Shown: piece after piece, positions 56,618-63,132 of the stretch
Layout: each line of letters opens with the position of its first letter
Position numbering within the stretch: position 1 is the first letter of the stretch
IMG/VR virus record: IMGVR_UViG_3300042350_002797
Span: 300,555-364,554 of that record
Strand: one strand, 5' to 3'
Length of the DNA stretch: 64,000 bases
The notes under the pieces: generated by a model
Seen by the model: the letters and a program-made list of their open reading frames with translations, nothing else
The model's database searches: none
Told to the model about the DNA's origin: nothing
Translations under genes and position numbers: made by a program

Positions 56618-56681
56618 TTTCGGTTGACAGGGTGTAGAGTTGGTGTTATACTAGCTCTACACTAACAGAACAGGAGCAGAC

Positions 56682-57059
56682 ATGCGATACTATGACGAAC
56701 TGGCCCGTTACGAGCGTGAGGGCTTTGAAATCATTGTGGATAAGACCTATGAAGACATACATCCCCAAGACTGTTTTGACGACTCCTGTTACGATATCCC
56801 ACAGATCTGCCGTGACATCGACATGGGCAAATACGAATGGTTCATGCTCCGAGTCCGGGCTTTGGTTGAAGGGCACGAGTTGGGATCGGCCTACCTCGGG
56901 GGATGCTTATACGAAGACGCCCGCGAAGTCCTTAGTGACGGGACAGCCGAGGACCAAATCTACTTGGCTCTAGAAGAAGCCAAGCGGGCAGTATGGCCCT
57001 TGATGCGTCGATTGCAGGGCATTAATGAGACTATGGAACTGGAGGCTGTTCGTGGATAA
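56682..57059 (+). CDS. Early hypothetical protein
   Basis: Cassette promoter + AGGAG; GSAYLGGCLY. Confidence 0.8.
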   Translation: MRYYDELARYEREGFEIIVDKTYEDIHPQDCFDDSCYDIPQICRDIDMGKYEWFMLRVRALVEGHELGSAYLGGCLYEDAREVLSDGTAEDQIYLALEEAKRAVWPLMRRLQGINETMELEAVRG

Positions 57060-57210
57060 TTTTTTGGTTGACATTGAGTACGATCCTGTGTATAATACTT
57101 ACATGGCTTGCTACTCCAATGGTGTGGTAATCCAGCTAGGAGCCACTACGTATCAGGATGCAGTACTAGAGGCTGATTCAATTGAACCTTATGACTATGA
57201 AGGAGCGTGA
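57052..57210 (+). CDS. Small acidic protein containing an embedded promoter
   Basis: GGAGG + GTG; VDNFLVDIEYDPVYNTY...AVLEAD. Confidence 0.55.
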   Translation: MDNFLVDIEYDPVYNTYMACYSNGVVIQLGATTYQDAVLEADSIEPYDYEGA

Positions 57211-57211
57211 A

Positions 57212-57502
57212 ATGAATATTCAAACTATTAATACCGCTATCATCAACGGTGGTTGGACCAATGCGGAACTCATGAGCATGACTGATGCTATTCGCTTTGC
57301 TCGTAAACGTTTAACAGAGCGTAGTAAGGCTGAACTGGCTGTGGGTGATGCAGTGACCTTTGACAGTACTAAACAGGGTCGGGTGGTTCGTGGCACTGTG
57401 CTTAAGATTGCTATCAAATATGTCACTGTACGGGAAACTTCAGGCGGCCTGTGGAAAGTGCCTGCTAACATGTTGAGCAAGGTTGAGGATGTTTACGCTT
57501 AA
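57212..57502 (+). CDS. Early protein with SH3/KOW-like C-terminus
   Basis: AAGGAG; VGDAVTF...GTVLKI..KYVTV...WKVPANML. Confidence 0.7.
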   Translation: MNIQTINTAIINGGWTNAELMSMTDAIRFARKRLTERSKAELAVGDAVTFDSTKQGRVVRGTVLKIAIKYVTVRETSGGLWKVPANMLSKVEDVYA

Positions 57503-57710
57503 TAGAGTATTAGAGTGGGGAGCCTGCATTGTTACCCTTATAGGTGCAGGTTTTACTGCTTACAATGTATACCCCTTGAACATTATGTTCTTGGAGTTTG
57601 GTGCATTAATTTATATCTTTTGGAGCATACGTATACGCAAGCTCAGTTTGATTATAATTAATGTGACGCTGTTTGCAATCTACTTACCAGGAGTTTTAAG
57701 ACACTTATGA
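57489..57710 (+). CDS. Small multi-pass membrane protein
   Basis: Three hydrophobic segments; YPLN. Confidence 0.65.
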   Translation: MFTLNRVLEWGACIVTLIGAGFTAYNVYPLNIMFLEFGALIYIFWSIRIRKLSLIIINVTLFAIYLPGVLRHL

Positions 57711-57865
57711 TTCAACAATACGAAGCGTGGTACAAAGACCCTAGAACTGGTGCTATGATCAAGGTCTACACCCAAGCAGATAATGTATCAGCAGCCAAAA
57801 GCTTGCTAGAAGGACAATATGGTGCTGCCAACATCTGGGGCGTAGGCGCAGTTTAACAATTTAAC

Positions 57866-57895
57866 AACCGTTGTAGAAATACAACGGTTTTTTTT
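57866..57895 (+). terminator. Intrinsic terminator overlapping an upstream promoter element
   Basis: aaccgttgta-gaaa-tacaacggtt followed by a T-run. Confidence 0.75.
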
Positions 57896-57959
57896 CGGTT
57901 GACTTTTGGCTAGGGCGGTGCTATACTATTGAAACTGTCAAAAACAACTAGGAGCTGAG

Positions 57960-58205
57960 ATGTCAAACTATCCAAATATGAGTTACTGCATGTTCCAAAA
58001 CACCCAAATGGCCATGGACCAGCTGATTACTTTTATGCAAGAAGCTGACCAGGATGACATGCTGGACATGAGCAAGGACGAGCTAAGGGCCATGCGTGAG
58101 CTGTTTGGTTATTGCGAACAGTTCATGAAGTTGGCAGAAGAGTTTGATGACCGTAGACAGCAGCTCCTGGATGCCTGCGAAGATGACGAAATGGAGGAGT
58201 TCTAA
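57960..58205 (+). CDS. Early hypothetical protein
   Basis: Cassette; NMSYCMFQNT. Confidence 0.75.
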   Translation: MSNYPNMSYCMFQNTQMAMDQLITFMQEADQDDMLDMSKDELRAMRELFGYCEQFMKLAEEFDDRRQQLLDACEDDEMEEF

Positions 58206-58468
58206 TGTATACCGTTGAAATCTACAAGAAGGATGCTCGTACCAAATCAGGCGAGCGTAGGGTACACAAGGAAGACTACAAGACAGACAATCGGTCCATG
58301 CTGGAGCATACTGTGCAGACCACATGGTTAGCACGGGATGGCTACCGCTACGAGATACACGAGACCTATGTTGTGCGTAAGAACGCCTTGAATGGGCAGG
58401 AGTTTGAAGAACGTTACGACGTGCCTTACTACTGCTCACCACGTAGCGAAACTTATTGGAGTGCTTAA
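58205..58468 (+). CDS. Early hypothetical protein
   Basis: GGAGGAG; PYYCSPRSETYWS. Confidence 0.75.
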   Translation: MYTVEIYKKDARTKSGERRVHKEDYKTDNRSMLEHTVQTTWLARDGYRYEIHETYVVRKNALNGQEFEERYDVPYYCSPRSETYWSA

Positions 58469-58668
58469 TGTTAACAGCTAAACAACAATGGTTATTTGAG
58501 CAACTGGGTGAGAGCCCAGCAGACGAGCATGAGGTTAGATTGCGTCATCGTCTATGCGTGGAGCAGTACGGAGCTGTTAAAGATTTCACAAGATGGCTGA
58601 CCAAGCGTCTGTATCGCAAGTGGGAGCTAGATCGTAGCAGAACAACAACACCTTATCTAGGAGACTAA
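58468..58668 (+). CDS. Hypothetical protein
   Basis: Coupled ORF. Confidence 0.55.
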   Translation: MLTAKQQWLFEQLGESPADEHEVRLRHRLCVEQYGAVKDFTRWLTKRLYRKWELDRSRTTTPYLGD

Positions 58669-58850
58669 TATGTTAAAAATAGCAATAGGTATGGGCAGCA
58701 TTGTTATGATGATTGCAACACTAATTACTGCTTTAGTAATAACCCGAATGTGCCTTAGTGCTGCTCATCACTTCCTGCTGAAATAGGTTGACATTTGGGC
58801 ACAGAGGTGCTATTATATACACACTTAGACAACAACAGAAGGAGAGCGAA

Positions 58851-61473: not shown

Positions 61474-61550
61474 CTGACCATAGCTCAATCGGATAGAGCA
61501 ACAGCCTTCTAAGCTGTAGGTTGGGGGTTCGATTCCCTCTGGTCAGGCCA
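61474..61550 (+). tRNA. tRNA-Arg (TCT)
   Basis: CTGACCA/TGGTCAG acceptor, loop CT-TCT-AA, CCA end. Confidence 0.92.
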
Positions 61551-61554
61551 AGTA

Positions 61555-61632
61555 GGGCCTCTAGCTCATGTTGGTTAGAGCAGCGGACTCATAATCCGTT
61601 GGTGCGCGGTTCGACTCCGCGGGGGCCCACCA
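61555..61632 (+). tRNA. tRNA with CAT anticodon, probably Ile2 (lysidine) type
   Basis: GGGCCTC/GGGGCCC acceptor, loop CT-CAT-AA; lacks fMet features (C1:A72 mismatch, GGG/CCC anticodon stem). Confidence 0.85.
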
Positions 61633-61737
61633 CTCATCTAGGTTAGTAAGCACTTACTTACACACTAAAATTTTGGTTGACTTTTTTGCGCAAACCTGTA
61701 TAATACAAACACTTAAACAAAACAGCAGGAGCGTAAA

Positions 61738-62037
61738 ATGCGTATTAAAAAAGCAACTAAAGCAGACGTAGCAACTATTGTACAAATTATGCAAGCAGAC
61801 CTTGCAAAATATGTAAAACTAACTAAAACAGCGTATGCAGACAAAATTGCAGACAGCACTTACATAGCAGAATTGCACTACGACGATATTGTACACAATT
61901 ACAATGCACTAGTGCAATTTATGCAAGACAAAGACACTGTAAAATTGTGCGACACAATTATGCGACAGGACACTGCACCACGGGAGTACTTTTACAAAAC
62001 TATACATTTTTGCACAGACAATTATATGTACTATTAA
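61738..62037 (+). CDS. Early protein in the TC-free island
   Basis: Cassette promoter + AGGAG; QDTAPRE. Confidence 0.8.
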   Translation: MRIKKATKADVATIVQIMQADLAKYVKLTKTAYADKIADSTYIAELHYDDIVHNYNALVQFMQDKDTVKLCDTIMRQDTAPREYFYKTIHFCTDNYMYY

Positions 62038-62109
62038 TTTTTTGGTTGACAAAGTGTGTGTGCTATGCTATAGTACACACACTTAAACAGTAATTGTAAG
62101 GAGCGTAAA

Positions 62110-62292
62110 ATGCAAACAGTTATTAAACAGCAACTTTTTAATAAATTAGCAGAAGTACAAGACCTGCTGAAACAAGCTACCTGCGACAGCGAAAGTTACG
62201 CACAAAGTTTACAGGATAACATTGGGTGGGCAGCTGAGCTAGATATTGCGCTGCGTACACTTACAGACAATGTAGATTATTACGTGGATTAA
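62110..62292 (+). CDS. Early protein in the TC-free island
   Basis: Cassette promoter + AAGGAG. Confidence 0.75.
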   Translation: MQTVIKQQLFNKLAEVQDLLKQATCDSESYAQSLQDNIGWAAELDIALRTLTDNVDYYVD

Positions 62293-62359
62293 TTTTGGTT
62301 GACAATGTAGTGTATGTGTGCTATAATGTACACATACACTAACAAAACAGGAGCACACA

Positions 62360-62524
62360 ATGACCGAAGCTAAAATTGAGCGGCTAGAGCGTACACTGTG
62401 GGAGCTGGAGCAGCTGGCTAGTGAGCTGTTTGACATGGGCTACATTACACAGGGCAATGCGATTTATGGCGTGGTAGAAACTGTAGACGCTGAGCTTGCG
62501 GACATTGTAGAAGGGAGAGAGTAA
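62360..62524 (+). CDS. Early acidic protein in the TC-free island (not in ORF track)
   Basis: AGGAG + ATG; MTEAKIERLERTLWELEQL... Confidence 0.7.
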   Translation: MTEAKIERLERTLWELEQLASELFDMGYITQGNAIYGVVETVDAELADIVEGRE

Positions 62525-62757
62525 TGTTATTGAAACAACACGTTAACGAACTAGTAAACATGGATGCTGCTGGCCTTAGCAAAATTACAAGGCATACAGG
62601 CTACAAGGATGCTAATTTCGCAACCTGCGAGTTTGTGGGCATTACTAACGGCGGTGAGTTTGCGTACAGGGCCAGCTACTACGAGGATGGCAGAGAACAG
62701 TTTACAAAATTGTATGTGTGGCGAGACACTGCTGGGAACTTTGTAGCAGACTACTAA
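62524..62757 (+). CDS. Early hypothetical protein
   Basis: Coupled; FVGITNGGEF.Y. Confidence 0.75.
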   Translation: MLLKQHVNELVNMDAAGLSKITRHTGYKDANFATCEFVGITNGGEFAYRASYYEDGREQFTKLYVWRDTAGNFVADY

Positions 62758-62822
62758 AAACGGTTGACATTTTGGACAGTTAGTGTATAATAGCTGCATA
62801 CGTTAACAAAACAGGAGCTAAA

Positions 62823-63065
62823 ATGTTTGCACAAGCTAAAAACAACACTGCTTACGCTAAATTGTCCTTTTGCAAAAAGCTAAAACTGTTTAAAATGATC
62901 GTTGCTTTTAACGTAACACAGCGTAACGCTAAGGGCAAATTGTTGTTTCCTGTACAACAAAAGTGCAACTATGTTAGTGGTCACTTTGCTTTAGAGGAGC
63001 TTGCTAAACAGTTAACAGTCGCGGAGCAGCACCTGCGTACAAATAAAATTGTAATTGCAGAATAA
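62823..63065 (+). CDS. Basic early protein
   Basis: Cassette; contains no Asp. Confidence 0.7.
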   Translation: MFAQAKNNTAYAKLSFCKKLKLFKMIVAFNVTQRNAKGKLLFPVQQKCNYVSGHFALEELAKQLTVAEQHLRTNKIVIAE

Positions 63066-63132
63066 AATTGGTTGACAAGCTAGTGTATGTGTGCTATAAT
63101 GTACACATACACTAACAAAACAGGAGCGAAAA

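Follow-up and report, generated by a model that had tools for sequence, protein, structure and literature searches.

PeSLs are intergenic promoter-stem-loop units that recur through the hyperplastic regions of two coliphages, RB49 and phi1, and each combines a consensus sigma-70 promoter, an A/T-rich upstream stretch containing the stop codon of the previous gene, a stem-loop, a Shine-Dalgarno (SD) sequence, and an ATG (Arbiol et al. 2010, PMC2839356). Five subclasses are distinguished by the position of the stem-loop (between the boxes, overlapping the -35 or -10, upstream of the -35, or downstream of the -10), G-T pairs are marked in the published stems, and the stem-loop of PeSL211/210 cut reporter expression about as much as rrnB T1 (PMC2839356). 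Terminator activity and mini-circles were demonstrated for RB49, and the authors viewed the stem-loops as terminators or attenuators of upstream transcription and the repeats as recombination sites (PMC2839356). Here we describe an array of promoters in the final 64 kb of a 364,554-bp virus record (IMG/VR IMGVR_UViG_3300042350_002797); this stretch of 64,000 nucleotides is called the window throughout. Six of the promoters lie in or beside hairpins whose mismatches are all G-T on the + strand. The mismatch counts given below support the conclusion that these promoter hairpins are selected on the sense strand, and we propose that the elements are probably PeSL-type cassettes in which a stem in read-through RNA insulates each cassette and the repeats act as recombination points. 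The array shares with the PeSLs and PmSLs of T4/PST and KVP40/nt-1 the composite promoter-terminator motifs, the hyperplastic setting, and gene exchange between close relatives; in those phages, however, the stem-loops lie just 5' of promoters that follow a weaker consensus (TTTACW or TTGYVH), whereas here the consensus is near-perfect and the stems lie over the boxes (Comeau et al. 2014, PMC4122927).

The array begins at a divergent promoter pair and contains 18 + strand promoters, from about 55,500 through the window end into genome positions 1-1,700. Its promoters have the form GGTTGACA, a spacer of 16-17 nt, and a TATAAT-like -10, often with an extended-10 TG; 15 + strand sites between 55.5 and 64 kb match 10-12 of the 12 positions of TTGACA-N17-TATAAT, a consensus of sigma-70 type. 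At every cassette an AGGAGC SD is followed after 5-8 nt by the ATG of a small open reading frame (ORF), and at P3, P4, P8, P11, P12, and P14 a TAA or TGA lies 3-35 nt 5' of the -35, followed by a T/A-rich stretch. The order within a cassette is the stop of the preceding gene, an A/T-rich stretch, the sigma-70 promoter, an A/C-rich initial transcribed region, the SD, and the ATG. Ten cassette proteins gave no Pfam family over the cut-off, and their PHROG matches were all to proteins of unknown function. Just 6-7 of the 18 array promoters, 15 of which lie in the window, have a stem; these are listed here with RNA folding energies, in kcal/mol, for the + strand and then the - strand.

P3, 56311-56389, + strand: stem-loop 56311-56344 with the -35 (56327-56332) in its loop, -10 at 56350-56355, ATG at 56387; 10 pairs, one G-T (G56319-T56336); fold -18.9 vs -12.3.
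P4, arm family A, 56624-56684, + strand: -35 at 56624-29, -10 at 56647-52, stem-loop 56632-56662, SD AGGAGC, ATG at 56682; 13 pairs, two G-T (T56640-G56654, G56642-T56652); fold -20.6 vs -10.2.
P8, arm family A, 59300-59361, + strand: -35 at 59300-05, -10 at 59323-28, stem-loop 59307-59339, ATG at 59359; 14 pairs, two G-T (G59314-T59332, G59318-T59328); fold -22.0 vs -12.8.
P9, 60547-60637, + strand: -35 at 60547-52, -10 at 60570-75, weak stem-loop 60557-60581, ATG at 60635; 10 pairs including one A-C; fold -5.0 vs -8.5.
P11, arm family C, 62046-62112, + strand: -35 at 62046-51, -10 at 62069-74, stem-loop 62052-62084, ATG at 62110; 15 pairs, one G-T (G62062-T62074), 3-nt loop; fold -20.7 vs -15.5.
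P12, arm family B, 62299-62362, + strand: -35 at 62299-304, -10 at 62322-27 and wholly within the loop, stem-loop 62308-62341, ATG at 62360; 14 pairs, one G-T (G62320-T62329); fold -21.4 vs -16.4.
P14, arm family B and near-identical to P12, 63072-63135, + strand: -35 at 63072-77, -10 at 63095-100 and in the loop, stem-loop 63081-63114, ATG at 63133; one G-T (G63093-T63102); fold -21.6 vs -20.1.

A repeat search returned all six inverted repeats that a first-pass annotation of the window had listed, with arms at 56632-44/56650-62 (13 nt), 59307-20/59326-39 (14 nt), and 62052-66/62070-84 (15 nt), at 62308-19/62330-41 and 63081-92/63103-14 (12 perfect pairs each, 14 with one G-T), and, around the P3 -35, at 56311-23/56332-44. 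When the six stems were read base by base they contained eight internal mismatches, and each was a G-T on the + strand, just as that annotation had claimed. Its statement that the arm sequences differ between promoters held for three arm families plus the -35 stem but not for five independent sequences. The right arms of P4 and P8 (56632 and 59307) are identical and their left arms different, P12 and P14 (at 62308 and 63081) do not differ over a stretch of about 50 nt, and these two near-duplicate pairs therefore reduce the set to three families and the -35 stem, with six independent G-T events. RNA folding of the six stems gave -18.9 to -22.0 kcal/mol for the + strand (z -3.5 to -7.4) and -10.2 to -20.1 for the - strand, the sense stems being the more stable by 1.5-10 kcal/mol. 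The P9 stem, which was absent from the earlier list, is unlikely to be a hairpin selected on the sense strand. At P12 and P14 the loop contains the -10; at P4, P8, and P11 this hexamer runs across the loop and right arm. The +1, predicted to be 7 nt past the -10, is within the right arm. The promoter's own transcript would therefore lack the stem, and the whole stem would be present only in read-through RNA; the geometry described earlier, in which the left arm is upstream of +1, was thus right.

Using two array proteins as queries, we obtained 138 related IMG/VR loci, contigs of 278-382 kb among them, most of which have about 20 such promoters on one strand. From 139 related sources 959 distinct promoters were collected, and the best hairpin was sought in a 90-nt window at each; because the hairpin score weighed G-T and A-C equally, it was unable to favour a strand. 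Hairpins with a score of at least 8 occurred at 91 of the 959 unique promoters (9.5%), compared with 85 of 4795 mononucleotide shuffles (1.8%) and 77 of 5208 column-permuted sequences (1.5%), an enrichment of promoter-overlapping hairpins of about 5-6 fold over both kinds of shuffle. A clustering heuristic placed the 91 strong hairpins in 71 families, 32 of which overlap the -10. The mismatch events in these 32 de-replicated families were 14 G-T, 1 A-C, and 5 transversions; whereas chance hairpins at the same position, generated by column permutation, had 34 G-T, 40 A-C, and 226 transversions. Relative to this position-specific null, with its G-T share of 0.46, the probability that at least 14 of 15 transitions would be G-T is 1.6e-4, and the transversion share was 25% of mismatches in the -10-overlapping hairpins vs 75% in the chance hairpins. 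Among the remaining hairpins of these loci, most of them coding, the counts were 18 G-T, 14 A-C, and 68 transversions; T-run terminators had 6 G-T, 2 A-C, and 5 transversions. We looked across these additional copies for A-C mismatches as common as G-T, and in the de-replicated -10-overlapping hairpins this was not so (14:1). All of the stem-loop positions described for PeSLs were seen among the relatives.

Several procedures were tried and set aside during this analysis. A null from whole-sequence shuffles (G-T share 0.63) was replaced by column permutation, which preserves position-specific composition, and hairpin scoring with a mismatch penalty of 1.5 was dropped because the stems were over-extended through transversions, a stricter score with clustering being used instead. 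A single promoter-anchored alignment was not used for the covariation counts, as stem registers differ by up to 3.5 nt between families. A G recurs opposite the final T of the -10, and we considered whether it guards against a second -10-like hexamer in the spacer; this was dropped because the stems of one relative, L138, have A at that place.

These counts bear on whether the hairpins might have no function: cassette duplication and template-switch 'palindrome correction' would leave them behind, and the G-T excess would arise through strand-biased mutation. Hairpins are indeed found at a minority of promoters, one orthologous site has lost its hairpin, the five include two recent duplicates, and non-template C-to-T and A-to-G changes would likewise yield G-T on the + strand. 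Against this stand the enrichment over shuffles that preserve position-specific composition, the depletion of transversions, the lack of such an excess in other hairpins of the same loci and strand (18:14), and the presence of the same layout in RB49, where one stem-loop had a measured effect; we therefore regard an absence of function as very unlikely.

We compared the stems with those of L088, a syntenic relative with 72-83% DNA identity. In the P3 orthologue both arms were swapped for unrelated, perfectly complementary 10-mers, with conservation of the looped-out -35 and of the promoter downstream; in the P12 orthologue the stem was retained via an A-T to G-C double change; and in the P11 orthologue the outer 8 pairs were retained and the inner stem was rebuilt from other bases. 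At all three sites there was thus compensatory or wholesale change of the arms with pairing kept. The P8 element is identical in L088, and another relative, L005, has a P4-type left arm at the P8 position. Phage L138 has nine -10-overlapping stems, the arms of which are all different, and many more unrelated arm sequences occur in relatives than the four or more found in one 7-kb array here. The difference of the arms between families and orthologues, with pairing retained, argues against a shared double-stranded operator. Operators for dimeric phage or host regulators overlapping the promoter would have the layout seen here, as an inverted repeat over the -10 is the classic operator arrangement, and two of the arm families each occur twice. 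However, the complementarity is contiguous over 13-15 bp, the arm sequences, at least 4 of them unrelated, have no half-site in common, arms are replaced wholesale at orthologous sites, and the mismatch asymmetry is strand-specific, so that operators appear extremely improbable. The 14 G-T to 1 A-C ratio (P = 1.6e-4) and the replacement of arms with pairing kept upheld the earlier proposal of a strand-specific hairpin as the object of selection, rather than a double-stranded operator.

The distribution of constraint between the arms suggests a route by which the stems may have arisen. An A/C-rich motif (ACACATAC-like) follows the -10, at positions +1 to +15 after it, in most of 665 related promoters; the consensus after the -10 (A.AcACATA) is family-wide across this set and constitutes the right arms in families B and C. 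Because the right arm of family A is invariant and its left arm variable, and because the region after the -10 has this family-wide consensus, we take the spacer to be the adapting arm and infer that it is this unconstrained spacer that evolves complementarity to the -10/start-site region, which is constrained. The left arm of the -35-enclosing stem in L088 (L088:9655-9667, ATACAACGGTAGG) resembles 57880-57892, the right arm of the terminator 5' of P6 (TACAACGGTTTTT), a hint that stems may be rebuilt out of pieces of neighbouring cassettes. Candidate roles of the A/C-rich initial transcribed motif are start-site choice, promoter escape, or stability of the 5' untranslated region.

The first-pass annotation had described the elements as reminiscent of PeSLs, and the likeness proved to be more than a resemblance: the published positions and G-T stems match, and RB49 showed the same layout when analysed with the same script. 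For this comparison the sequences of PeSL211/210 and 206/205 were taken from the RB49 genome record. In 66 kb of RB49 a hairpin was found at 17 of 29 promoters, with 3 G-T, 0 A-C, and 1 transversion, and in several of these hairpins the spacer supplies the left arm, the right arm spanning the -10 to the start site. No T-run follows the stem of PeSL211/210, whose start region is likewise ACACA-rich, and an A/C-rich, ACACATAC-like motif follows the -10 at RB49 L142:5200-5330 and 3660-3760 (-). The elements described here share with the RB49 and phi1 PeSLs a near-perfect TTGACA-N17-TATAAT, an A/T-rich upstream stretch with a stop codon, an SD and ATG at the 3' end, stem-loops with G-T pairs between the boxes or over the -35 or -10, and dense arrays among small unknown genes with indels bounded by elements; the A/C-rich sequence after the -10 is likewise shared with RB49. 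They differ in that RB49 stems are mostly short G-run/C-run stems of 7-9 pairs in the spacer, whereas those here have 13-15 pairs, are not G/C-runs, and lie mostly across the -10; terminator activity and mini-circles are results from RB49.

The phage also differs from RB49: it is a jumbo phage of 364 kb, and the isolates nearest to it are Rak2/GAP32-like. Known PeSL carriers being T4-type myoviruses, we note that both a major capsid protein (PF07068, E 8e-100) and a portal (PF07230, E 9e-112) of T4 type are encoded in the record, yet the best capsid matches, at 68-73% identity, are to Rak2/GAP32/CBB-like jumbo myoviruses rather than to Straboviridae. In the part of the literature covered, we found no description of PeSLs for Rak2/GAP32-like jumbo phages, and the CBB paper describes RpoD-like promoters with UP elements and reports no stem-loops; PeSL-type elements are apparently undescribed so far in this lineage.

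The stems share with intrinsic terminators a stable RNA hairpin ending a transcription unit, and two hairpins of the terminator type are present in the array.

57863-57897, + strand: canonical intrinsic terminator, stem 57863-57892 plus a T-run, directly abutting the -35 of promoter P6 (57899-57927, + strand), an arrangement of the 'stem-loop upstream of -35' kind.
60999-61047, + strand: terminator-like hairpin (60999-61037) with a T-rich tail, after an ORF of 116 aa.

Relatives contain clear cases of a G/C-rich stem with a T-run within or beside a promoter, whereas the six window stems lack the T-run that follows a G/C-rich stem within 0-2 nt in a canonical intrinsic terminator, and are therefore not of that kind; a terminator consensus scan flagged 57866-57889 as the sole + strand intergenic site. 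In polycistronic RNA, hairpins between cistrons such as REP elements, which act as 3' stabilisers, and the RNase III sites of T7 delimit the messages upstream of them or shield their 3' ends. The role of REP-like 3' stabilisers fits stems without a T-run; RNase III sites typically contain internal loops and measure some 20 bp or more, against 13-15 bp for the stems here.

Strand-specific DNA hairpins at promoters are known for the phage N4 virion RNA polymerase and for Frpo of the F plasmid. N4 hairpin promoters have 5-7 bp stems, 3-nt loops, and no -35 or -10, and in Frpo the stem itself rebuilds a duplex -35/-10; in contrast, here the -35 is outside the stem and the -10 is in the loop or one arm of an ordinary duplex sigma-70 promoter. 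A single-stranded hairpin promoter of the N4 or Frpo type was ruled out by this ordinary duplex consensus promoter, the hairpin itself not being the promoter. Control at the DNA level might nevertheless operate if a cruciform or non-template hairpin hid or exposed the -10 in response to supercoiling or single-stranded states. The palindrome is long and nearly perfect, with a short loop, and the -10 is contained in that loop or in the right arm, which would suit such a device, as would the fact that G-T is the least destabilising DNA mismatch. But a cruciform predicts no consistent strand, because a G-T on one strand is always an A-C on the other, and we observed 14:1 for the sense strand. A non-template hairpin would need about 35 bp, from -30 to +5, to be unwound; in sigma-70 open complexes the spacer is held as duplex by the polymerase. 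Furthermore, the -35-enclosing and spacer-only variants of relatives and RB49 leave the -10 unsequestered. We consider DNA-level control of the promoter highly improbable, and of the two physical readings, an RNA stem in read-through transcripts or a non-template hairpin in single-stranded DNA, we favour the former, by analogy with the RB49 elements.

The favoured explanation, PeSL-type cassettes with a stem in read-through RNA, would operate as follows. Either the free spacer or the stretch 5' of the -35 would, in a minority of the units, have turned complementary to the constrained -10/start-site region, so that a 13-15 bp stem-loop overlaps the promoter. The stem would form in RNA reading through from the upstream cassette, and it would attenuate or end that RNA, or serve as its protective 3' hairpin, with the outcome that each small-gene cassette is expressed from its own promoter; by analogy its function may be that proposed, and partly reporter-tested, for the RB49 PeSLs. 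Mismatches would be G-T on the sense strand only because G-U pairs are tolerated in read-through RNA. As the stems have no T-run and canonical terminators are present elsewhere in the array, the exact effect on the RNA could be termination, pausing, processing, or 3' protection. The repeated cassettes would serve as homologous exchange points, allowing insertion, deletion, and shuffling of the small genes between them.

Several observations weigh against this explanation. There is no hairpin at 11 of the 18 array promoters or at about 90% of those across relatives, and the P14 orthologue in L088 has the right arm, an unrelated spacer, and no stem, so that the stem is dispensable at any single site. 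An A-rich sequence, with no T-run, follows each of the six stems, and the occurrence in one array of such stems and of the canonical terminators 57863-57897 and 60999-61047 may mean that the two have different jobs. The mismatch counts rest on small samples, and the -35-enclosing hairpins of the wider set showed no G-T excess (4 G-T : 3 A-C). The metatranscriptome material consisted of sparse, low-depth contigs unable to show RNA ends, and it provided no direct RNA evidence: only three RNA runs contained 5-11% of phage words, but on 57200-63180 they gave scattered read-length contigs at a depth of 1-7 that covered no stem and could reflect DNA carry-over, and deep tRNA-like matches in these runs came from other organisms. 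A tentative alternative, in our estimation unlikely, is that the long, T-run-less, -10-spanning stems are a separate device rather than attenuators, either an RNA 'insulator' or a single-stranded DNA hairpin targeting exchange, which has evolved repeatedly via spacer complementarity; if the insulator version were true, the translation and stability of each cassette would be independent of upstream read-through.

Metatranscriptome contigs from two runs both start at 60628, 7 nt 5' of the ATG of the 116-aa ORF; as contig ends are not RNA ends, this shared start can at most hint at a message that is processed or abundant. The same ORF has a perfect-consensus promoter 5' and the terminator-like hairpin 3'.

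Gene content and order vary among the relatives, and gene order is altered in L008 and L012. One clear case only of an indel bounded by elements was found: in L088 a pair of cassettes encloses three additional small ORFs (16566-17143) at the point occupied in the present genome by the single cassette P14. Near-identical cassette pairs flank modules of 0.8 kb (P12/P14) and 2.7 kb (P4/P8), and no rearrangement was seen among five independent contigs of this phage. Alternatively, the palindromes might be recombination hot spots only, with hairpins in single-stranded replication intermediates cut by palindrome or junction nucleases to drive shuffling and no role in RNA; the indel and the duplicated cassettes are located at the elements, and SbcCD-like and junction-resolving nucleases are found in T4-type phages (RB49 annotation). 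The homology of the promoter unit of about 60 nt, however, accounts for exchange without a hairpin, and hairpin-less cassettes were shuffled as well. A role in recombination alone, moreover, predicts neither the sense-strand G-T nor the compensatory maintenance of stems, and we think it unlikely.

The remaining promoters of the window are as follows.

P1, 55577-55604, + strand: without hairpin; first in the + strand array, diverging from a - strand promoter at 55531-55504.
P2, 55881-55909, + strand: without hairpin.
P5, 57068-57096, + strand: without hairpin.
P7, 58788-58816, + strand: without hairpin.
P10, 61677-61704, + strand: 3' of a tRNA cluster, without hairpin.
P13, 62764-62791, + strand: just a 6-pair stem around the -10, with one G-T, kept in L088.
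P15, 63793-63821, + strand: without hairpin.

The tRNA cluster in the array (tRNA-Leu/Arg/Met) occupies 61385-61632. Directly 5' of it, within an ORF at 61198-61383, is a TTGACG-16-TATAAT promoter-like site at 61307-61334 (+), possibly the promoter of the cluster. Between an 83-aa ORF and P15 there is an ORF-free stretch, 63400-63790, with a core at 63508-63706 that is about 83% identical to L088:17438-17636, above the conservation of the neighbouring genes. A two-sequence consensus fold of this core and its L088 counterpart has 5 compensatory pairs and no Rfam match, and 63508-63706 is a candidate structured non-coding RNA; a search of the window against Rfam gave no family except tRNA, with nothing in 63370-63800.

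Comparison of the record ends with contig L001 showed that positions 1-171 are the same 171 bases as 364384-364554 (window 63830-64000). Because both ends share these 171 bases the assembly is circular, and the promoter array runs on across the circular junction into genome positions 575, 931, and 1668. DNA of the phage is common in DNA runs of lake-water metagenomes. Near-identity and protein searches of a collection of isolate phages did not find a close relative of the early region; these searches gave tRNA matches and distant matches to a 188-aa protein and nothing else. The early cassette region (52000-64000) has a G+C content of 43-46% vs 34-39% across most of the window, with positive GC skew, the exceptions outside it being 41% at 1-4000 and 43% at 24001-28000; the higher G+C possibly reflects a different origin or an expression-linked composition. 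Elsewhere in the window, a tRNA with anticodon CUA, of the amber-suppressor type, lies at 49642-49717 (+); ARAGORN labelled it tRNA-Pyl, and Rfam confirmed it as a tRNA. A run of large - strand ORFs (1116, 1597, 631, 750, and 3190 aa) occupies 5986-33364, and we assume that these are virion or fibre genes.

The finding does not involve a new kind of mechanism; it is a known kind of element, real and selected. The range of PeSL-type cassettes, so far one of cultured T4-like phages, now takes in a large uncultivated group of jumbo phages from fresh water, with arrays of about 20 such promoters in at least 139 related sources, and the analysis adds a quantitative, de-replicated test for sense-strand selection of their stems. 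It also suggests a route for their origin, in which an unconstrained spacer would come to pair with the constrained -10/start-site sequence. In annotation, such palindromes are not to be taken as operators, and for synthetic biology these compact promoter-plus-insulator units would be worth testing.

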